Below are positions 48,156-62,579 of a DNA stretch of 64,000 nt, piece after piece (the first letter of the stretch is position 1; every line of letters begins with the position of its first letter). The notes under the pieces were generated by a model. That model was not told the DNA's origin and did no database searches. It was given only the letters and a program-made list of their open reading frames with translations. The stretch spans positions 3,658,001 through 3,722,000 of the forward strand of contig JBLDXI010000054.1 in NCBI GenBank assembly GCA_047495785.1. The letters are read 5' to 3'. The position numbers and the translations under genes were made by a program. The stretch is from Lepidodermella squamata. Lineage: Eukaryota; Animalia; Gastrotricha.

Positions 48156-48998
48156 ATGGCTCGTGTTGCAGTTGTAACTGGATCAAACAAAGGCATCGGG
48201 TTTGAAGTCGTCAAGCAGCTTTGCGAAAAGAATCCGTCATGGATCGTATATCTGACATCTCGCGATACTGGGCGCGGTCAAGAAGCCATCAAAGAATTGA
48301 AGTCCAAGGGATTAAACCCGCATTTCCACCAGCTAGATCAAGATTCTGTTGAGAGTATTCACAAATTCGCCGACTTCCTGAAGAAAGAGCATGGTGGACT
48401 AGATGTATTGGTTAACAACGCCGCCATTGCTTACAAAGGAGATTCACCTGCTCCTTTCAACGAGCAAGCCAAGGTCACCAATGCTACAAACTACACCGGG
48501 CTAATCAACGTTTGCAAAGCTTTATTCCCGCTGCTGCGCGATCACGCCCGAGTTGTTAATGTGTCATCTCGAGTTGGCCATATGATTTTCCCGAAATTAT
48601 CGCCCGCACTACAGGACGCTTGGAAAAAATGTGCAACTATTGAAGACGTGGATAAATTGGTCAAGCAATTTGTGGACTTGGCCCAGGAGAACAAGCATGA
48701 AGCGGCTGGTTGGGTCAGTTCAGCATACGGCACGTCAAAAGTCGGAGTAACCGTCGCCACTTACATTCAACAACGCGAATTCGACGCCGATAAATCGCGC
48801 AAGGATATTGTTATCAATGCTTGCTGCCCTGGTTATGTTAAAACTGACATGAGCTCCCACAAGGGGCACAAGGATGTGGCTGATGGTGCCGACACGCTGG
48901 TTTATTTGGCGATGCTGCCTGAAAATATCGAATCACCGCGCGGTCAGTTCGTCAACGAGCGTGTCATCAATAACCTTTTCGACGGTAAAGCATTCTAA
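48156..48998 (+). CDS. Carbonyl reductase (CBR1-like) NADPH-dependent SDR, copy 1
   Basis: TGSNKGIG, DVLVNNAA, VNVSS, YGTSK, CCPGYVKTDM; intronless. Confidence 0.95.
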   Translation: MARVAVVTGSNKGIGFEVVKQLCEKNPSWIVYLTSRDTGRGQEAIKELKSKGLNPHFHQLDQDSVESIHKFADFLKKEHGGLDVLVNNAAIAYKGDSPAPFNEQAKVTNATNYTGLINVCKALFPLLRDHARVVNVSSRVGHMIFPKLSPALQDAWKKCATIEDVDKLVKQFVDLAQENKHEAAGWVSSAYGTSKVGVTVATYIQQREFDADKSRKDIVINACCPGYVKTDMSSHKGHKDVADGADTLVYLAMLPENIESPRGQFVNERVINNLFDGKAF

Positions 48999-49127
48999 CT
49001 TGCAAAATAATGACAATGGCTGTGACATTGAATAATGACAATACCTTGCCTGTGATTATTTTTCGTAATTGTATCTATTCACCATGTCATAATACACTTA
49101 ATTTCACATAGAAATATTTTTTTTGTA

Positions 49128-49227
49128 ATGCAAAGAGTTCAAATCGTGGACTTGGTTTCGCTATCGTCAAATGATTGTGTCAAATTGAGGCGGACTTTGT
49201 GGTTTACTTGACTGCTAGGAATTAATC
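49128..49227 (+). pseudogene. 5' fragment of the third CBR-like gene, left by a tandem duplication
   Basis: Matches 50453-50568 with an internal deletion and a tta>tga change. Confidence 0.85.
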
Positions 49228-49465
49228 GATTTTTCGGAGACGGAGCAAACAATTTGACCGACTTACAGGAGATTCAGCCAGTTAGAATCAAGTCGGTCAA
49301 ATTTTTCTAACCAGATCCTTTTAAACCGCAACCTAAAAGCAGTAGGTAGTAGTAAGCAACTTTAACTATGGTTCCATTTTGCAATATTTTTTCGCCATTC
49401 TTTCGTTCATTTATTGATATTTCACGAGTCGCCATTTTTTGTCACCTAGGCTTATATAGAATAAA

Positions 49466-50308
49466 ATGGCTCGTGTTGCAGTTGTTACTGGATCAAACAA
49501 AGGCATCGGGTTTGAAGTCGTCAAGCAGCTTTGCGAAAAGAATCCTTCGTGGATCGTATACCTTACGTCTCGCGATACTGGGCGCGGTCAAGAAGCCATC
49601 AAAGTATTGAAGTCTAAGGGTTTGAACCCACATTTCCACCAGCTAGATCAAGATTCTGTTGAGAGTATTCACAAATTCGCCGACTTCCTGAAGAAAGAGC
49701 ACGGTGGACTGGATGTATTGGTTAACAACGCCGCCATGTCTTACAAAGCAGATTCGCCGGCTCCGTTCAACGAGCAAGCCATGGTTACCAATGCCACAAA
49801 CTACACTGGGCTAATCAACGTTTGCAAAGCTTTATTTCCGCTGCTACGCGACCACGCCCGAGTTGTTAATGTTTCATCTCGAGCTGGCCATTGGGTTTAC
49901 CAAAAAATATCACCCGCCCTTCAGGATGCTTGGAAAAAATGTGCAACTATCGAAGACGTGGATAAATTGGTCAAGCAATTTGTTGACTTGACCCAGGAGA
50001 ACAAGCATGAAGCGGCAGGTTGGGTCAGTTCGGCGTACGGCACGTCAAAACTCGGCGTAACCATCGCCACTTACATTCAACAACGCGAATTCGACGCTGA
50101 TAAATCGCGCAAGGATATTGTTATCAATGGTTGCTGCCCAGGTCCTGTTAAAACTGACATGAGCTCCCAGAAGGGGGAAAAAGAGGTGGCTGATGGAGCC
50201 GACACGCTGGTTTACCTTGCGATGCTGCCTGAAAATATCGAGTCACCGCGGGGCCAGTTTGTCAACGAGCGTGTCATCAATAATATTTTCGATGGTAAAG
50301 TATTCTAA
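49466..50308 (+). CDS. Carbonyl reductase (CBR1-like) SDR, copy 2 (recent duplicate of copy 1)
   Basis: Near-identical to 48156-48998; YGTSK intact. Confidence 0.95.
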   Translation: MARVAVVTGSNKGIGFEVVKQLCEKNPSWIVYLTSRDTGRGQEAIKVLKSKGLNPHFHQLDQDSVESIHKFADFLKKEHGGLDVLVNNAAMSYKADSPAPFNEQAMVTNATNYTGLINVCKALFPLLRDHARVVNVSSRAGHWVYQKISPALQDAWKKCATIEDVDKLVKQFVDLTQENKHEAAGWVSSAYGTSKLGVTIATYIQQREFDADKSRKDIVINGCCPGPVKTDMSSQKGEKEVADGADTLVYLAMLPENIESPRGQFVNERVINNIFDGKVF

Positions 50309-50452
50309 TTTGCGAAATAATGACAACGGTTGTGACATTTAATGATGACAATACTGTGCCTGTGATTATTTTTTTTTAACTTTTTGTAATTTCGTAATCT
50401 CTCCACCATGTCATAATACACCAAATCTCGCTTAGAATTATATTTTGTTGTA

Positions 50453-51280
50453 ATGCAAAGAGTTGCTGTTGTAACTGGTTCAAATCGTGGACTTGGTTTC
50501 GCTATCGTCAAATTATTGTGTCGAAGTGATGCGGACTTGGTGGTTTATTTGACTGCTAGAAATGAATCACAGGGATTAGATGCAATTGAGAGTTTGAAAA
50601 AACTAGGCCTAACTCCGAGATTTCATCAACTGGATATCACAAATCGGTCAAGTGTTGAAAATTTACGCGATTTCCTCCTCAAGGAGCACGGTGGTTTGGA
50701 TTTGTTAGTCAATAATGCTGGAATAGCTTTCAAAGTTGATTCGCCGGTGCCATTTAGCGAGCAAGCCGAAGTCACGATAGGGACCAATTATTTTGCAACG
50801 CTTGGCGTATGCGACGTTTTATTTCCGATTTTGCGTGATCACGCGCGTGTTGTGACGATTTCGAGCACGGAAGGCCACGATTCATTAGCAAAATGCTCGC
50901 AGGACATTCAAAACGCGTTCAAGTCATGCGAGAGTGTTGCGCAAGTCGATGAGCTGATGCGGAAATTCATCGAACTGACAAAAACTGGACAGCATGTTGC
51001 GAACGGCTGGTGTAACTCGGCGTACGGAGCGGCTCACATCGGCTTAACAACGGCTACTTACATTCTGCAGCGCTTAATCGACGCGGATGAGTCACGTCGT
51101 GATGTAATTGTCAATTCGTGTTGCCCGGGTTACTTGAAAACTGATATGTCTAGCTTCAAGGGCGATAAAACGCCCGAGGAAGGCGCGGATACCCCGGTTT
51201 ATCTTGCTACACTGCCGAAAAATTGTGACAATCCAAAAGGTTGCTTTGTTACTGAGAGAAAAATTTTGCCGTTATTTTGA
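50453..51280 (+). CDS. Carbonyl reductase-like SDR, divergent copy 3 (YxxxK changed to YGAAH)
   Basis: TGSNRGLG, NNAG, CCPGYLKTDM; catalytic Lys replaced by His. Confidence 0.93.
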   Translation: MQRVAVVTGSNRGLGFAIVKLLCRSDADLVVYLTARNESQGLDAIESLKKLGLTPRFHQLDITNRSSVENLRDFLLKEHGGLDLLVNNAGIAFKVDSPVPFSEQAEVTIGTNYFATLGVCDVLFPILRDHARVVTISSTEGHDSLAKCSQDIQNAFKSCESVAQVDELMRKFIELTKTGQHVANGWCNSAYGAAHIGLTTATYILQRLIDADESRRDVIVNSCCPGYLKTDMSSFKGDKTPEEGADTPVYLATLPKNCDNPKGCFVTERKILPLF

Positions 51281-52407: not shown

Positions 52408-54301
52408 CGCCCATTCGAACGTGTCTTTTCTTGGCAATTAAAGCATAGTTCTACTCAATATTAATGGCCGAAGAAGACGATCGGCTGTGATTCAATTGAG
52501 ATTTCTGCGCACTTCGACAGCGTCGTCTCAATGCCTAATTATTTCCAGCCTGGTAAAGGCTTTGATAGCGACTTTTGACATTTTCGTCACCGCTCATTAC
52601 AATGTTGCGCCCTCACTTCACCCCTGTATGGAAACCGAACTCGTATATTCAAAGAGTAGTCAGAATAATCGAATAAGGGAATGAAACCAGAGATCACATA
52701 CCTCAATCGCAAGCAAATTTTGCGCGATAATTTTGTCCTCGGCGAAAATTCAAGTTTCGGCATTTCAGCATAGACATACCTTACATAATTTGCACTTAAC
52801 CTGACGCTGCAAGAATCTGTGCTTCGATATTTTTCACAGTACGATTGAATCCTATTGCCATTAGGCCTTAGGTGCCTTTCAGAATAGGGGTGAAATGTCT
52901 GCGTTTCTGCTGCCTATCAAGTCCCATTTAATTCTAGCACACCAAGCGTTTTTTCTCCTAGTTCGAGGGACATCTATTTAGTAATTAAGATGCTTTACGA
53001 TAAAAGGTTGAGGAATAAGCTTCAAGATACATGATCGGTGGGAAAGAGTGATGAAAACAAGTAAAAACGCCCATTTAATAGCGAGAATTTTTGATCGCAC
53101 GCATTCGACGCAATGACGTCAAAGGTCAAGTTAGGAATTTATGGGCGGTTTTTGTGTCTAAAAATGCTACAAGCAACAAGCTTCAAAATGAATATGGGGT
53201 TCTCGCGCGAAAAATGCAATGGGAAAAAATTTTAGGCGCACCTCGCAAAAGTGCGCACAAGGTGACAAGTGTGTTAATTTTACATTTTTGATGCCTCCAC
53301 AATAATGGCTTATAGCATGAAAAGTACGCATCGGGGATAAAAACGGATTGCACCATGAGATTCCCCATGAAAAACTGCATTAGAAAATGGCGAAAAGTCA
53401 TTTTCGATAAATCAAACCTATCCAACCTTCTTTGCACTCTGGCGAACATTTTACAGAAGTGCGTAACCCACGGTTTTCACTTGTGGCGGCTCATATGTCT
53501 ATTTGAAATAATACACGCTGGCACAATACTTCATTGATTAGATAGCCGCTGTTTTTTCGTCCCAATCATGTATTTTTGCAATTTATCTGTGCCTTTTTGC
53601 TGGGAAATTCGCTTTTCTCGACACCTTGCTCCACGCCTCTGCTGTTATCTTACTTAACATAATATGACGAGCTGTTTAATAAATATTCCAGTATTTGTTT
53701 TTATCTGTTGAATATTTTTAATAAAAATACCTATGATTCATTATCGAGGGTTTAACTTCCCGACCCTGGATCGTGTTTTTATCAATTTCCCAGGTTGCGG
53801 ACGTTCAGATGTAAGATGAATTATAAGCAAACAGCGAGTGTGAGGACAAGTTTTTGCCAACTTGAGTCACTTGAGTTCGGTATCAGTCGAAAACATCGGT
53901 CAGAAACTTGTCACTGTTTGCGCAGGTGCCACATTGCTCATGCTAAACTCGGTTTGATACGCACCGAAAATAAGCGGCGAAGCCACGGTGTAATGAATCA
54001 CCGGTTATCACAACATTGACGTGGCACAAGAGCGGCAAGTGTACATCGTCAAAAGCGCGAGCGGTGAATCACACGCGCTTCCTTTCATATTGCGGCTTCG
54101 CGCTATCGGTTCGCTACGCCATGGTTGCATCATCTTTCGGGAAATTTCCAGAACCTGCGCACACGATATTGCACGGCTTTAAAGCATCGGCATTTATCGC
54201 CCGGCGGCTTTTCATTTATTCATTCGCAACATCTGGTAATTTCGATAACTATCGACATTACCTTAACTGCTCATCATCTCGGCGAGAAATTCGATATATT
54301 T

Positions 54302-54733
54302 ATGCAGCAGGTCAATAGTTCAAGCAAAAAGTCGGTCTCATTCGCTCGCCTTGTCCACGTTCGATACGTCATGTCGAACCCGCGTCATTATCGCAGCAGG
54401 GTGATTGAAGTTGAGAACGATGAGAACGCAAACGTTGAAATTGGCTGTCGACATGACAAATTCGACGAGATAGCAGCAACGAACAAGCCGGTGATCAAAT
54501 ACTCGCGTGACCAGCTGTTGGCGATACGCGACTCTGTGACAAACCTTGAACGTGCTAATCTGGCGACAAGTGCAGCCATTCCACCGGCGATAATTCGATC
54601 GACCGGTGACGCAACGCCGCCACCGGCAAACATCCGATATTCGAGCCGAGAGCTGTTGGCCATCCGGAACAGCAGCTCAAGCAATGGCTGCCTTATCAAC
54701 ATAGCTAGTCTTCCAGCGGCGATACGCAAGTAA
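54302..54733 (+). CDS. Small protein A: RVxF-like PP1 motif plus two eIF4E-binding (YxxxxL-phi) modules, 143 aa
   Basis: KKSVSFARLVHV; KYSRDQLLAIR..IPPAIIR; RYSSRELLAIR..LPAAIRK; AATAAA at about 54944. Confidence 0.8.
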   Translation: MQQVNSSSKKSVSFARLVHVRYVMSNPRHYRSRVIEVENDENANVEIGCRHDKFDEIAATNKPVIKYSRDQLLAIRDSVTNLERANLATSAAIPPAIIRSTGDATPPPANIRYSSRELLAIRNSSSSNGCLINIASLPAAIRK

Positions 54734-55898
54734 ATAATTGCGTGCGTCTCTGTTTACCTCGAGGCCGAAATCGGCTTAACGCCTGGATGAGAAACTTGAA
54801 AAACTTAGCAACGCTGTGATGATCATATCCAGGCGGAACTGATGTAAATAATCGTGCTTTCGCTTATTGTTCTTCTTATACGTGATGACATATTTTTACT
54901 TGCGATCGTGTAAATACGAAAATGAAATGCGAATATGAAAAAAAATAAAGCGGAAAAACCGCAACAGTTTTAAGGTGGTGTTTTTTATTTCAATCCTCTC
55001 ATTAATTTTCGTCGCTTGTCTCCAAATTTAATGCCCAACTGGACGTATAAAAACGATATAACCAGGGTCATACGACGTAATAGCGCGACGCGGCAATTCA
55101 TCAGAGACCAACGTCCTTTCGGCCTTAGAAGTGTTCGGCTATCAAAGTTTTACTGGGCAATGAATAAAGCGGCAGCAGTCGGAACGTGATGTTGGCACGT
55201 ACGCAGGTTTTAGGATCCGCAGGAGTCACGCACGAGTTTTGTCGATCGTTAATTTTTTTTCACATCTCATTATCGTCTTCTTCGTCAATTACCACACGCT
55301 CGACCAGGTCGCTAATTTTTTCGCTAATGGGTGGCGACATATGGGCGGGTTTATTAGTGCCAATTTTTGTTGCAACCGAAGCGAAAGTAAATTTAACGCA
55401 AACAGCTGACGTGAAACGGGTAGGGAGCGGGGAAGATAATAGCTATACTTACTCTAACAACAACAAACAGGCCACACCATCTCGTTAGATAGGCTAAACA
55501 CGCCCAGGTAAGTATATCATATGCAATGGTAGGCGGCTCTTAAATAATGTTATTGACGTTTTCGTGTTTGGCTAACAAAACAACAAATAATGCGCACAGA
55601 AGGTAGAAAACCCATGGCCTAGCCAAGCTTTGGCATCATCATCTAAACACAGCGTGGGCTCAGCAGCGCCACCAACAAGATACCTCTACACAACACAACC
55701 ACGGCGGCACGAATTTCCTATAGCAAACTGTATACTGCGATAGACGCAGGCATGAATAATACGTAGCTGTATATGCAATCAGGCGTAATTTAAAAAGTCT
55801 GACGCACATGAATAATATCGTATAATATGGTGCGAGTACTAACGGCCGGCTGCGTAAACTTATCTGCGACGTATGCAGCAAAACAAAGCTGCACGCTG

Positions 55899-55980
55899 AT
55901 TGGCTGGCGCACTGCCTAGTACTCTAGAATATTCGCCTGCCGCGTATAAAAGCGTGCCAAATGCGCGTACAGTCTCATTC
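55899..55980 (+). promoter_or_regulatory. Pol II core promoter of small protein B
   Basis: Reverse CCAAT (attgg 55899-55903), TATAAAA 55945-55951 and Inr-like TCATTC 55975-55980 at canonical spacing (about -76 and -32). Confidence 0.65.
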
Positions 55981-56166
55981 ACTCTCAAATGCGCTACTAA
56001 ATAATATAACAAAGCGAGCCAAGTTTACGAAACCGTTGTCGTTTCTGCTGAATATTACGTGCTATATATTTCATCGCTTCCTCGGCACCTGTGAAATTTT
56101 TATTTCGACAAACGTGTGATTCATTTCTATTTTTCGTACCTTCAAATACCGTCTAACTCAATCGCC

Positions 56167-56565
56167 ATGGCTTGTTACACGAGGCAGCAACTTGTCGATC
56201 TTCGCAACAAATCGTCGCCCGCCGCCGATTTCGACACCACAGTCATTCCTCAGCAACTTCGCAAAACTCAGCTTCAACCGGTGATTAGTTACTCTCGCCA
56301 GCAGCTGCTGGCAATTCGCGACGCGACACCCGTGGTCGAAGAGCCGTCAACAATTCCCGATGACCTGCGCCGGCCGTCTTCACGCTTCCGATGCGATTCG
56401 AATTGTATGAACGAACAGCAGCACGAGACCAAGAAGATACTCAAGTACACGCGAAACGAGCTTCTCCGATACAAAGCCGCCGCTATGCAGTCGTGTGCCG
56501 CCCAGACTCGCGCTCTCGAAGCGACGGCGCCTGAAGAAATCTACCTCCGCTCGCTCGGTCGTTGA
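56167..56565 (+). CDS. Small protein B: three eIF4E-binding modules, 132 aa
   Basis: gccATGG start; CYTRQQLVDLR..IPQQLRK; SYSRQQLLAIR..IPDDLRR; KYTRNELLRYK..APEEIYLR; AATAAA at about 56723. Confidence 0.82.
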   Translation: MACYTRQQLVDLRNKSSPAADFDTTVIPQQLRKTQLQPVISYSRQQLLAIRDATPVVEEPSTIPDDLRRPSSRFRCDSNCMNEQQHETKKILKYTRNELLRYKAAAMQSCAAQTRALEATAPEEIYLRSLGR

Positions 56566-58793
56566 TTCGTGTTAATTCGCCTCAATGCAATGCAATTCTG
56601 CGAGTTCAGATGCTTCAAGTCATCATTGTCATTACTATTCGTGTTTTTTTCTCGGTCCAAAACTGAAAAATCGCTTCTCTTCGTTGATAACAATATTATT
56701 ATCATAAACACTGCCTCGTTTTAATAAAAACAGAAATCTGATGAGCGGAAAATTCGGTTCTTTTTTAGTTCTCGGTTATAACTGGAAAAAGTGACATGAG
56801 ACCAGACGATTATACCTCTTTCTATCATCTTGTCTTCGAATTTCGAAAATTCGACATGAAGATCTATAATTTTTATCTGCCATTTTGTATGTCTAGTACA
56901 TGTGCAAATTGGCTTATTGTTATATTGAGTTGTTGAGAAGCAATAAAAATTGACGATCAGTTTGATGAATCATTTGTTCTTTTTTCTTCACGTTTCGTTG
57001 ATTAATAGTTTCATTAGTGGCGCGTGTGTTTGACACTAGTGATTCGGCGGCGGCCCAGTGACATAAGCGCGATGATGAAAGGCCGGTGTCGATATATTAC
57101 GCCAGCCGTCCATCTGTTGCTGCTGCCTTTATTAGCAGCGCGCACAGCAAAACGTCCAACGGTCGGCGAGGAAAACATTTAGCGCAGGCCGGGTCAACGG
57201 CGGGTCGGCGAGCGGCGCGCCACGTAAGACGTTGCGTCAAAATATTATAAAAAGGCGCAAATCACGTATTGGGTGACTGCCGCTTTTATTGCCCACGGCT
57301 GCTGAGCTGATGATGAATTGATGTGTCAGGCAGGCAGGCAGGCAGGCGATTAAAGCCGCCCCGTAATAACGCGCAATATAATTACATTATTATTTATTCG
57401 ATTCATTTTGCATCGCCTAATCTGCTCTGTTCAAGTGTAGGCTGTGACACACGCCAGCCGCGAGCTAGTCCGATAATAGCGGCTAATAATAGGTAATAAT
57501 TATCATCAACCGCAAAACACACCTGGCACTTGCCTGCGCTTGACCGATCAAATTAATTAAAAGTGAGTTCGGGAAAACATCGCATTCGCGGAATTTTACA
57601 ATTAAGTTGGAGCATCTCGTAATTAAATAAAGAAATTCCCACCTGTCCTACCACCACCTTCCATCTCGGTGCAAGACAACAAAAATATTGCGGCGTAGTA
57701 GTATACACATAAACGCAGACGTCACGGGACTTGGCTAAGGTTTTTTGGATTGTTTTCACTCTATAAAAAATGCCACGCCAGGATCGCTAACCACGTGGTA
57801 TGAATCACGAGACCTCGTTTCGCACTACTCGATTTTTTATAGATTATTCTATTTTTTTTGCGCTGCGAAAGTATGTCTCTGTAGTGCGAATACAATACCA
57901 TTAAGATAATACCGAGGCGCGGCACATTTATTTCCCATCGCGCTGGCTGCTGGTCTGGATGCCGCAGTTTTTTATTATCGGGCCAATGAGCGCGTAATGT
58001 ATTGCTATTAATATTATCATTGCGTGCTTTGATGCATAAAAAACCACACAAAAACATCACTCGTTTTTTTCTCTCACGTATATGATATATACTGCTGTGG
58101 AACTTTTGCTACCCAAGTACTGACGTAATTTATAATTCCCGTTGATAGTTCTTGCCGTGGAGTGCATTTATTTTGCCATCACCACCATGAAATATGCTAA
58201 AAAAATGAGCACAAACAACTCACGTTATCGCGTTAGTTTTTTTCACCTCTACTGAAATAAACCACCGTTGCCAAAAGTGCCTTGTTGTTTTCCTGCTTTC
58301 ATGCAGCAGGGTGGGGTGCAAAAGGTTATAGAGGGCATCCACGCGGCGTAATAGGCAACAGAACATAGCCATAATTTACCGATTCACTTATTTCACATTG
58401 AAGTGTATAGAGTATATAACTCAGTTTTTTCTCGCTGTGTATAATTTTTTCTCGCTTTTCATCACCGCAAAAAGGGAAATTGTGCGGGGTCTAATATATT
58501 ATATGACGCAGGGGCGCTAGAGGAGAGTTGATCCTGGATTGAATGAAAAAATCGAAGCTGTTCATTCACGCGTAATTACTACTTGTGTGGCTTTCTCTCT
58601 TTCTCTCGCTTCATCATCATAATCATCATCGTCGCAAACAAATCCATTTTGAATTTCTTATGATTTCTCTTTTTTTATAAATAGATGAAATAAAGCCTCG
58701 TTTTTTGTACAATACTACGTACAGCCAGTCAGTCAGCAATTCTTCGTGATATTTTTTTAAATTTTGGTACTACTTTCTATATTCAAACAAACA

Positions 58794-59309
58794 ATGGCTG
58801 AATCGCGAGGCAATCGAGCTAATACTGATAATATGGCGGTAAAAACCAGCGCCACGCCTGCAATCTCGATCCAGTGTCGACCGCGGCGTTATTCTCGCGG
58901 TCAGCTGGTGGACATTCGCAACTCGACATCGTCGACCATCAGCTGTGCTAGTTCTTTCGACGATAGCGATTGCGCCATCGCTAACAACGTGTCTTCCTCA
59001 TCCGCAATGGTTCTCAAAATTCCGCTGGCCCTTCGCCGGACCAACTTGCTGTCGTCGTCGTCGAGCGCCGGAGCTGACGATAGTTGTTTCTCGTCGGGTG
59101 CTAGCAGTCCGAGGCGCCAGTATTCACGCGATGAATTGGTCACCCTGCGCAAGGGCGAAAGCTTGAGCGCTGCGAGCAGTCCGAAAAACGACCGCCAATT
59201 CCTGCGTTCGAACAGCAACAACAACAACAACTGCATCGATGACGATGGCAGCGAGCAACAGCGCCGCCTGTTGGCTGTCATTCCACCTGAAATTCGCCGC
59301 GCTCTGTGA
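58794..59309 (+). CDS. Small protein C: two eIF4E-binding modules with Ser-rich linkers, 171 aa
   Basis: acaATGG start; RYSRGQLVDIR..IPLALRR; QYSRDELVTLR..IPPEIRR. Confidence 0.8.
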   Translation: MAESRGNRANTDNMAVKTSATPAISIQCRPRRYSRGQLVDIRNSTSSTISCASSFDDSDCAIANNVSSSSAMVLKIPLALRRTNLLSSSSSAGADDSCFSSGASSPRRQYSRDELVTLRKGESLSAASSPKNDRQFLRSNSNNNNNCIDDDGSEQQRRLLAVIPPEIRRAL

Positions 59310-61308
59310 TAAATAAGCGGCGATAAATATAATAACTGAAAAACATGACTTTTTCTATAAAAAAACTACAATTCGTCCCGAGTTTTCCAAGAAAACCGCT
59401 GGCGTGCCCTTTTTCATACTATCCGTTCTTTCTGAATTACACTTGACCCGTTTCTTTTTTTTCGCGCGACAATGACTGGAGTGAAGACTAATCGTAGATC
59501 GGGAAAATCAAACCTTAGTTCATTGAGAAAAAAATCTCACCATACTGGAGTTTTAAGATGGATTTTTTTCTCATTTTTCCCAGGGACTCCCTGAAGTAAT
59601 TCTAAGCCCCAAGGGCTCAAATTCGAGGTTAATAGAAAATGAACTTTATTTTTATTGAATTAGAGAACGTTTCCCGCTTCGTCTCTTACTCTTTCTGCAC
59701 CACTGACCGCAAAACACCGCAGGCGTATCTCTAAAACTTGTTTTGTCTATAAAGAAAACTGCTTTTCATTCTTTAATTTCTTTATATTTACGGGATTCAT
59801 CTTTGGAACTTTTGTATTTCTGTTGCATTCCCATTGCCATCAGATGAAGTCTCGAGTAATATTCGAAATCAGCAGGTTTTTTTTATTAAATGCTACTACC
59901 TATCTGTATGTCATTCAAACTTTAAAATTTTACGAATGGTGGGTGTGTATTACAAATGGGATAATTGACGTTGACGATCGATTTTCGCGACTTGTTTTTC
60001 GGCAAATCGTGTGCTTTTCGTAATGCGATACCTACCTACCATGAATATGGAGGAGGAAATTCTATACCATGCTTTATATTGTTATTACGACTCTTCTCTT
60101 TCTCGCGATAACGTAAAATGAAAGTGTGTCATCTATCACCAGAAGTCATCATCGGCGAGAAGTATGCTCTATCGTACGATAAAATTTAATGAATTGCAAT
60201 TTTTGTATTTTTTTGTAATAAAAACTTTTCAACGTGCAACGACGCGTCGGCTTTTTTCCGCTCCCGCATCAAATCAAGTCTGGAAAATTCCTACGTGAAT
60301 TATTGAGTCTACATCCTGTCTCTAGAGTGCATCAGGTGGATGAGCCGATTATGCGGCGCAGAGGATTTCCATAATCCCATGAGAGTTCGTTTGAGTCATG
60401 TGATCCGGATGTTATCAAATGATTGAAACGAATTAGCCTGAAGGGCTTCGTGCTGCAGCAAAAAAATACCAGGAAAATGAAAATAGGTAAAAACAGGTAG
60501 CTTTAGCTAAGTTGGAAGCTTACCCGGAGTATGAAGTAATTATGGAGTGATGAAGTAAACAATAATAAGCACGGACTCAAGTTCGTATTGGCGCCAAGTT
60601 TTTGCGCCAGATCAAAAATTCGATGTCCCCAGCGCAATAACAGTAGGTCAGTTGTATGGTCAGTGGTTGAGGTCAAATTTCAAAATGTGATCTCTGCAAC
60701 AATTTACAGGAAATGTGGCCTAGTGCCTGTTGCATATGGTGAAGCACATGGCCTTTTCTAATGCGTATTGAAATAAATGACCCAATTTTTCCAAGGTGGA
60801 GTATCTAAGTCACAGACTTTGACAGAAGTCCGGTTGGCCTACATAGCTTGCACTAACGATGTTCGATGTCAAAGAGGCACGTGCCGATCATTTATCTAGC
60901 TTTTTTTTATTTTTAGCATGTAGGCCTATGTAAGTCGTCACATTGTTACTACGCTACGAAAAGGCAACTCGTGACCCAATTTTATTCTTCACTGAGCTCT
61001 TTGTTGTCATAAACATTCAACCAGTAATTATTACTTAGAGAGGTTATTATTTTACCCAACTGACCCACATTATCAAGATGAAAATTTTTATGCTAGTTGC
61101 CAACAATGACGGAAATGGCTGACCAAGCTCGGCAGTTTTAATGTAAATCCATTTGCTAAGGAATTTGCTTATCACTACGCGATATTAAATCTTTGTTAAT
61201 AGCGCGCTCTTATTATATTTCCAGAATATTTTCAACTAATTGATTCCCTCGGAAATTTTAGTTTCATTTTTAACCCTATTTACTGTCCAGTTTTAACTTT
61301 CAATTGCA

Positions 61309-62579
61309 ATGAACAACCAAATGACAAACGGTAACAACACCAACGGCGTGGCCTGTGACGGTTTCACGATAAAACTCGAAGGCAAAACGAGTGCAACGAT
61401 GACACCGAGGCAGCATCTACTTTCGATAATGCAATCTCGAACGTTATCGGAATGTCTGTACATCTGCGCGGAACGGGGCATTGCCAACCATGTCAGAAAA
61501 ACCGAGTCGGTCAGCGCCGCGGAACTGGCGAAGCGTCTCGGCTACAACGAAGGCAATCTGCGAAGGTTCATGTCTTATTTAGCCAGCCATGGCATTTTCC
61601 GCGAGCTTCAAAACGGCGTTTTCATTGGCACCGATTTGTCGGACGCGATGCGAGACGACGCCCCGGACAGTTGTGCAAAAGGCCTGCGATGGGCCGGCTG
61701 TGAGCCAATGACGAAAGCTCTGTACCAAATGGAACACTCGCTTCGAACCGGCCAAGAAGCGTTCAGCGTTGCAAATGGCGCGCCAATGTATGACTTTCTA
61801 TCGGCTAACCCTGGCTACGAGACCTTGTTCGACCAAGCTATGCCAGCTTATCACGAATTGATGGTAAAACACTTGACTACCCGTTACGATTTCAACGGCC
61901 ATCCTAGAATTGTCGAGCTCGCTGGCGGCCGTGGGCAGTTGGCGAAACACATTTTGCAACGATTTCCCAGCGTCGCTAGCCTGACAATGATCGAGCGTGA
62001 ATCTGTTGTTAGAAACATCTTGCCTGAATTAATCACCGATCCTGCTTTCAACGCTCGATTCAAAGCTGTTTCCGGCGATATTTTCCAGCCTATTAGTGTA
62101 ATTTTATTATTATTTTTTTGTAAAAAATGACGAAACAAATTAAGGCGGAATTTTTTAATTTTCGGAAATTTGAAAAATTTGAATTTGAATTTTTTAAATT
62201 TTCTGTTGAATTTTGTTTTTTTTAGGCGGACGGTGATTTGTACGTTGTTCTCAATACGATGCACAATTTCAGCGACGAACAAGTTGCGCAAATTCTCGCC
62301 AATTTGCGAGTCGCGTTGCAGCGCAATACAAACGGCCGGCAGTGTAAATTGCTCATCGTCGAGTTCGACACTTATTGCTATGAAGCAAACGAGCCGGCGA
62401 ACCTGGCTCGATGCATCGATCTGCTGATGATGTACGGCTTTGGCGGCAAACAACGCAACGAAGACGCGTGGCGCACACTCCTCGCCGCTGCTGGCTTGCA
62501 GCTGGTCGACGCCACTAATGGCATAATTCGTCTGCCGCCCATGTTCACCGCCTATGAGTGCAAGCTACTCGCGAATTGA
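61309..62579 (+). CDS. Class II SAM-dependent O-methyltransferase (ASMT / Methyltransf_2 type with winged-helix dimerisation domain)
   Basis: SAAELAKRLG..LRRFMSYLASHGIF; VELAGGRG; SGDIFQPI; MHNFSDE; GGKQRN. One phase-0 intron 62098-62225. Confidence 0.92.

Follow-up and report, generated by a model that had tools for sequence, protein, structure and literature searches.

The locus analyzed here raises the question of whether a small protein of the gastrotrich Lepidodermella squamata, protein A, uses a short string near its N-terminus to bring the phosphatase PP1 to eIF4E. PP1 draws its specificity from docking subunits, and in translation the best-known case is that of GADD34 and CReP, which combine an RVxF string with an eIF2-alpha-binding motif. 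An initial annotation of the window (the whole 64,000-nucleotide stretch of DNA under analysis) had proposed that protein A fuses a PP1-docking motif to eIF4E-binding modules and might recruit PP1 to eIF4E or the cap complex. The gene coding for this protein is the first of three small neighboring genes, A, B and C, whose features are as follows:

54302-54733 (+): open reading frame of gene A, intronless, coding for 143 amino acids, with the stop codon at 54731-54733
54192-54301 (+): 5' UTR of gene A, to the extent reached by transcript contigs (an X3 contig, see below)
54488-54601 (+): eIF4E-binding-like module 1 of protein A, with the canonical Y67-S-R-D-Q-L-L (in full Y-S-R-D-Q-L-L-A-I-R-D-S) and then IPPAIIR
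54626-54730 (+): eIF4E-binding-like module 2 of protein A, with Y-S-S-R-E-L-L (in full Y-S-S-R-E-L-L-A-I-R-N-S) and then LPAAIRK
56167-56565 (+): paralogue B, 132 amino acids, three modules and no RVxF motif, with the orthologues P0002 and P0003
58794-59309 (+): paralogue C, 171 amino acids, two modules and no RVxF motif

We mapped the contigs of three public runs (X1, X2 and X3) onto positions 53700-59500. Those of X2 cover this region evenly throughout, and X2 is therefore a genomic run. The contigs of X1 and X3 are instead confined to three islands, over A (54192-54890), B (about 56052-56752) and C (58683 onwards), and they bear SMART adapter sequences and poly(A) tails; accordingly, X1 and X3 are cDNA, and genes A, B and C lie on real mRNA. 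No splice joints are seen in the X1 and X3 contigs over the three islands, and all three genes are preceded by TATA-plus-initiator-like promoters and A-rich start contexts. Gene A itself is covered by an X3 contig (54192-54779) and an X1 contig (54323-54871), and since the leader from 54192 to 54302 is free of ATG in all frames, the first AUG of its mRNA is the one at 54302. Gene B is by far the deepest-covered of the three in the cDNA runs, with gene A far below it, contig depth being a poor measure of expression. The leader of gene A carries insertions in other runs, namely TTC after 54218 and C plus C at 54295-54296, the latter six bases before the start codon and with the -3 base unchanged. 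Single X1 contigs also display poly(T) directly before 54842 and 56623 on the + strand, which would be explained either by antisense transcripts that run over the 3' UTRs of A and B and have their 3' ends here, or by chimeras in the library.

The eIF4E half of the question depends on the repeated modules of these proteins. Two copies of the canonical Y-x-x-x-x-L-phi motif occur in protein A, and module 1 of A shares 13 of 16 residues with module 2 of B, by which measure A is a true paralogue. The two orthologues of B, derived from transcripts of two other samples (P0002 and P0003; L023:235-690 and L024:224-658) and respectively 56% and 49% identical to it, keep all three Y(S/T)RxxL(L/V/I) motifs along with the IPxxL(R/K)(R/K) motifs. 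Across the 13 modules of A, B, C and the two orthologues the tyrosine and the leucine are invariant and the arginine is nearly so. From this form, and from its conservation in the orthologues of B, we infer that the Y(S/T)RxxL(L/V) modules of A bind eIF4E. Other stretches conserved in the B orthologues are RFRCDSNC and a C-terminal (L/F)RSLGR.

A profile of the 13 canonical modules (19 columns), run against the animal's own genome, picked out no modules beyond the seven in A, B and C; its next hits were discarded as chance matches, for example one inside a membrane protein. As far as this first-look search could see, then, the module family comprises three genes in this genome. In addition, the genome has three or four loci for eIF4E and a single, separate canonical 4E-BP gene (G000:C1:613982-614476, C32:1803101-1803623 and C24:4106048-4106329; C7:557055-557328), the motif of the latter being YDRQFLLRCKDSP, with which the modules of A share their form. 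Given that the genome possesses its own canonical 4E-BP gene, the A/B/C cluster is additional to the standard 4E-BP.

The docking half of the question depends on the N-terminal part of protein A, where we distinguish the following features:

54326-54370 (+): the peptide KKSVSFARLVHVRYV, residues 9-23 of protein A
54329-54343 (+): RVxF-type motif K10-S11-V12-S13-F14, which matches three RVxF patterns and has predicted PP1 pocket contacts
54350-54370 (+): hydrophobic, beta-prone stretch L17-V23 (LVHVRYV), a candidate phi-phi strand, with residues 18-20 on beta14 in the model
54380-54385 (+): P27-R28, a candidate Arg-motif contact, both residues being in the predicted interface with PP1 Arg-pocket residues

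The initial annotation had given this peptide correctly with a span of 54326-54372, whose last two bases already belong to the codon that follows; the true end is 54370. An RVxF motif is defined as [K/R]-x(0,1)-[V/I/L]-x-[F/W], where x is not Pro (PMC10731240). We used a loose pattern, [RK]-x(0,1)-[VI]-{P}-[FW], and the stricter Meiselbach and Hendrickx patterns, and KSVSF matches all three, so that the N-terminus of A does fit RVxF as had been claimed for it. In 20,000 shuffles of protein A the loose pattern was matched by 7.8%, the Meiselbach pattern by 0.7% and the Hendrickx pattern by 3.1%, the corresponding values for pooled shuffles of A, B and C being 17.9, 1.5 and 7.5%. A strict match is uncommon for one protein, but a match of such strength would be met fairly often when many motif classes are scanned (a look-elsewhere effect). 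Neither B nor C matches any of the three patterns, in line with the earlier observation that both lack the motif, and the loose pattern likewise finds no match in the B orthologues P0002 and P0003. Because it is missing from B, C and the B orthologues, the RVxF motif is not a family feature of A/B/C and may be recent and unconstrained.

Structure prediction of the N-terminus with PP1c had been suggested as a check of the motif. The animal's own genome contains two spliced PP1c genes (L006 and L007). As partner we took a full-length, arthropod-like PP1-beta from the database (P0025), found with the largest exon of L007, in place of joining the exons; P0025 is 96% identical to that exon over its length and has a similar C-terminal tail. 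For the complex of P0025(1-303) with protein A(1-60) we obtained ipSAE values of 0.90, 0.88 and 0.90, whereas the best of three controls scored 0.20; at least 70% of the contacts agreed between runs, and the partner pLDDT was at least 54. In calibration, 51 of 78 solved complexes passed the mark for this score, as did 2 of 108 mismatched pairs; the calibration set excludes peptides and disordered or predicted chains, and the score can reward motif likeness.

In the predicted complex V12 contacts PP1 residues 168-169, 242-243 and 288-291, and F14 contacts 261 and 290-292; V18-H19-V20 is paired with the PP1 strand beta14 (293-295), and the interface takes in the whole of residues 17-23. On the PP1 side the interface comprises 169, 242-243, 255-261 and 288-300, and also 70-71, 73-74, 78 and 270. 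It coincides with the published RVxF pocket (I169, L243, F257, R261, C291 and F293), the phi-phi site on beta14 and the Arg pocket (D71, R74, P270, L296 and P298) (PMC10731240). VHV, the phi-phi pair of the initial annotation, thus falls on beta14 as a phi-phi element would, and degenerate pairs of this type are documented, including HV in a VKHV strand (PMC10731240). Y22-V23 was at first considered the better phi-phi candidate; the model places V18-V20 on beta14, and both are kept as candidates. At the Arg pocket, residues 27-28 of A are in the interface, as are PP1 residues 70-71, 73-74, 270 and 296-298, and R28 is without a reported low-error pair; P27-R28 is accordingly a candidate Arg-motif contact, read from the interface lists and not pair by pair.

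Given that the predicted pose contacts the RVxF pocket, beta14 and the Arg pocket, the PP1-docking motif is structurally credible beyond a pattern match. Of the PP1 recruitment that had been proposed for protein A, it is this docking half that gains independent in-silico support. A PDB sequence search (E up to 10) recovered no solved chain resembling A(1-60), so that the high complex score does not come from a memorized homologous complex; what the model has learned of the motif class may nevertheless contribute to it. When protein A is modeled alone, 142 of its 143 residues have a pLDDT below 50, a result consistent with disorder, which is usual in PP1-docking regions, but weak inasmuch as AlphaFold2 was run as a single-sequence model with no alignment.

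These observations suggest, with a probability that we place at about 0.4, that the N-terminal string of protein A docks PP1c while its two modules bind eIF4E, such that PP1 would be brought to eIF4E-containing complexes; we regard it as possible to the same degree that the PP1 dock by itself is functional. Protein A, small and probably disordered, is in this sense a candidate for a new PP1-interacting protein, plausible though unproven. Residues 10-28 would constitute an RVxF/phi-phi(/Arg) string docking the PP1 catalytic subunit, in which V12 and F14 plug the RVxF pocket, V18-H19-V20 adds a strand to beta14, and R28 possibly reaches the Arg pocket. The two bipartite eIF4E-binding-like modules would in turn bind eIF4E, and A would bridge PP1 to eIF4E complexes. 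There PP1 might keep dephosphorylated either A itself, which has Ser-rich stretches after each module, or neighboring cap-complex proteins; the Ser-rich stretches are proposed as substrates purely because 4E-BPs have phosphosites through which they are released. We further conjecture that phosphorylation at Ser13 (of the RV[S]F type, with two Lys upstream) and at Ser11 might switch the docking off. The fullest version of this scheme, in which A serves specifically as the subunit that targets PP1 to eIF4E, a cap-complex counterpart of GADD34 that holds PP1 there via its two modules, keeps itself or its neighbors dephosphorylated and is turned off by RV[S]F phosphorylation, we consider unlikely.

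Several known systems offer partial parallels. PPP1R15A/B (GADD34/CReP), along with HSV-1 gamma34.5 and ASFV DP71L, bridge PP1 by combining an RVxF-phi-phi(-R) string with an initiation-factor-binding motif (PMC12185105; PMC10807198), and the use of RVxF-phi-phi strings by GADD34/CReP, to which the initial annotation had appealed, is thereby confirmed (PMC12185105). Protein A is predicted to resemble PPP1R15A/B and the viral mimics in placing a disordered string and a short factor-binding motif on one small polypeptide. It differs from PPP1R15A/B in showing no homology to them (Pfam and PDB sequence searches, E up to 10), in that the W element of an RVxF-phi-phi-Arg-type string is absent, protein A having no tryptophan, and in that its partner motif is of the eIF4E and not of the eIF2-alpha type. 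By these features A is not a member of the PPP1R15 family. It does resemble V-x-F-x3-V-x-V-[RH], which we take to be the pattern of the R15 and gamma34.5 proteins, a likeness not used here as evidence.

Closer to the 4E branch, Neurabin-PP1 dephosphorylates 4E-BP1, and Neurabin and Spinophilin resemble A as proposed here in that an RVxF-phi-phi string directs PP1 to the 4E-BP/eIF4E branch (PMC12185105). However, Neurabin and Spinophilin recruit 4E-BP1 via a PDZ domain, whereas A would carry the dock on the 4E-BP-like protein itself, with neither a PDZ nor any other domain. With canonical 4E-BPs (Thor; PF05456) A has in common Y-x-R-x-x-L-L-x-x-[RK]-[DN]-S, followed 10-45 residues on by a Pro-containing hydrophobic motif; it departs from them in having two modules rather than one and an N-terminal PP1-type string, and in giving no match to PF05456 (eIF_4EBP), a family that was not recovered in B or C either in the Pfam scan. 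In KNL1, phosphorylation of RVSF by Aurora B disrupts PP1 binding (PMC2845083). Protein A has a comparable RV[S]F-type site with basic residues just upstream, but KNL1 is an unrelated protein in an unrelated process, and a phospho-switch in A would be an analogy with it. A full-text search of 8.4 million texts found no paper on a 4E-binding protein that itself carries a PP1 dock.

If true, the bridging of PP1 to eIF4E by protein A would connect PP1 to translation initiation in a second and independent way, here through the cap, and would offer a model for how a 4E-BP-like repressor could escape kinase inactivation by having its own phosphatase. Since gene A seems to be confined to a single lineage, it would also represent a docking motif that arose on a recent gene duplicate. 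A PP1-docking protein A is a prediction and not an established system, and because everything about A beyond its sequence and transcription is prediction, the interest of the case is moderate.

The strongest alternative is that KSVSF is a chance short linear motif, located in an N-terminal extension that is young and under weak constraint in a duplicate specific to the lineage, and with no role in the animal, though it may stick to PP1 in the model or even in vitro; we hold this to be a real possibility, if on balance a doubtful one. It is favored by the occurrence of the loose pattern in 8-18% of shuffles, by the fact that the eIF4E-like module and not the RVxF motif is the family feature, and by the isolation of A. 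No relatives of A were found by a word-index protein search, and a full HMMER search of 1.84 billion representative proteins gave no true match; P0001 was rejected as a spurious repeat protein that matches only through YSGSRELMVV repeats. An ESM Atlas feature search with A yielded no usable match, Pfam contains no relevant family for A, B or C (and none for A at E up to 10), and searches of the animal's own 121-Mb genome with whole A, B and C found each time only the query itself. For the first 60 residues of A, alignment gives no counterpart in B or C (P = 0.18). A derivation of this extension from the 5' UTR of B, as suggested by MAFFT, was also rejected, in that the best local 5' alignment is like that of shuffles (P = 0.18) and lies elsewhere. 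Against a chance origin stand the matches to the strict patterns as well (0.7% and 3.1% of shuffles), the placement of the following strand on beta14, a complex score far above the controls, and the variation within the species. The second haplotype of A, seen in X1 and X2, has four synonymous changes (codons 17, 23, 29 and 143) and two replacements, R33K and E83K, which are conservative or in the linker. Among these within-species haplotypes (X1/X2) residues 9-23 have two synonymous variants and no amino-acid variant; the synonymous excess over A is marginal (P = 0.03-0.10), the sample of polymorphism being tiny.

A further reading, to which we assign little weight, is that the N-terminus of A serves some other end, as a kinase or 14-3-3 phosphosite (KKSVSF) or as a targeting or RNA-binding tail, for example a mitochondrial presequence. 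The composition of residues 1-35, basic, Ser-rich and acid-free (7 K/R, 2 H, 7 S/T and no D/E), is consistent with such roles, and K-S-V-S-F-A resembles what we take to be the R-S-x-pS-x-P and R-x-x-S consensus sites. The helical hydrophobic moment of residues 10-17 is however low (0.05-0.25), unlike that of typical presequences, and a mitochondrial presequence, which fits by composition only, was rejected. Moreover, the rest of A, with its eIF4E-type motifs, looks cytosolic, and these roles leave the high-confidence PP1 pose unexplained. A phosphosite within an RVxF motif is in any case compatible with PP1 docking, as in the RVSF of KNL1 (PMC2845083).

The last alternative concerns the start codon, and depends on one more feature:

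54371-54373 (+): second in-frame AUG of gene A (M24, codon 24), in the context tacgtcATGt, with G at -3

At the first AUG the context is weak (atatttATGc, T at -3) and that of M24 is better, with no out-of-frame ATG between the two, and leaky scanning to M24 could produce an isoform of A that lacks the RVxF motif. That translation proceeds mostly from M24, so that the main product is without the motif and the upstream 23 codons are mainly leader, is improbable in our view. It is favored by the weaker context of the first AUG and by the start of one cDNA contig (X1) at 54323, downstream of it. Against it stand the X3 transcript contig (54192-54779) that includes the first AUG, the tendency of scanning ribosomes to use a first AUG at least partly, the synonymous nature of the variants at codons 17 and 23, and the 54323 end itself, where the neighboring adapter is not oriented as it would be at a true 5' end. 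Since this orientation is that of a library junction, 54323 was not taken as a transcription start.

Some further observations concern the PP1 genes and the surroundings of the locus. The PP1-beta gene L007 (G000:C45:26003-29572, minus strand) contains an in-frame, stop-free intron of 54 bases after ...KICG, through which a naive open reading frame call would add 18 extra residues to the catalytic domain. A divergent PP1-like paralogue (L008, G000:C103:32954-36520), with GDLHGQF..., consists mostly of one long exon and has an unusual C-terminal extension. Gene C displays an in-frame deletion of 15 bases in X2 after 58836 (58836-58850) and, in X1, X2 and X3, a CAA insertion at 59215 in a run of Asn codons; it therefore varies by whole codons, as expected for a coding low-complexity gene. 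In the window, three tandem intronless open reading frames of 275-280 amino acids (48156-51280), the first of which was scanned and is a short-chain dehydrogenase, and an O-methyltransferase-like open reading frame (61309-62130) provide useful synteny anchors for the A/B/C locus in other species.
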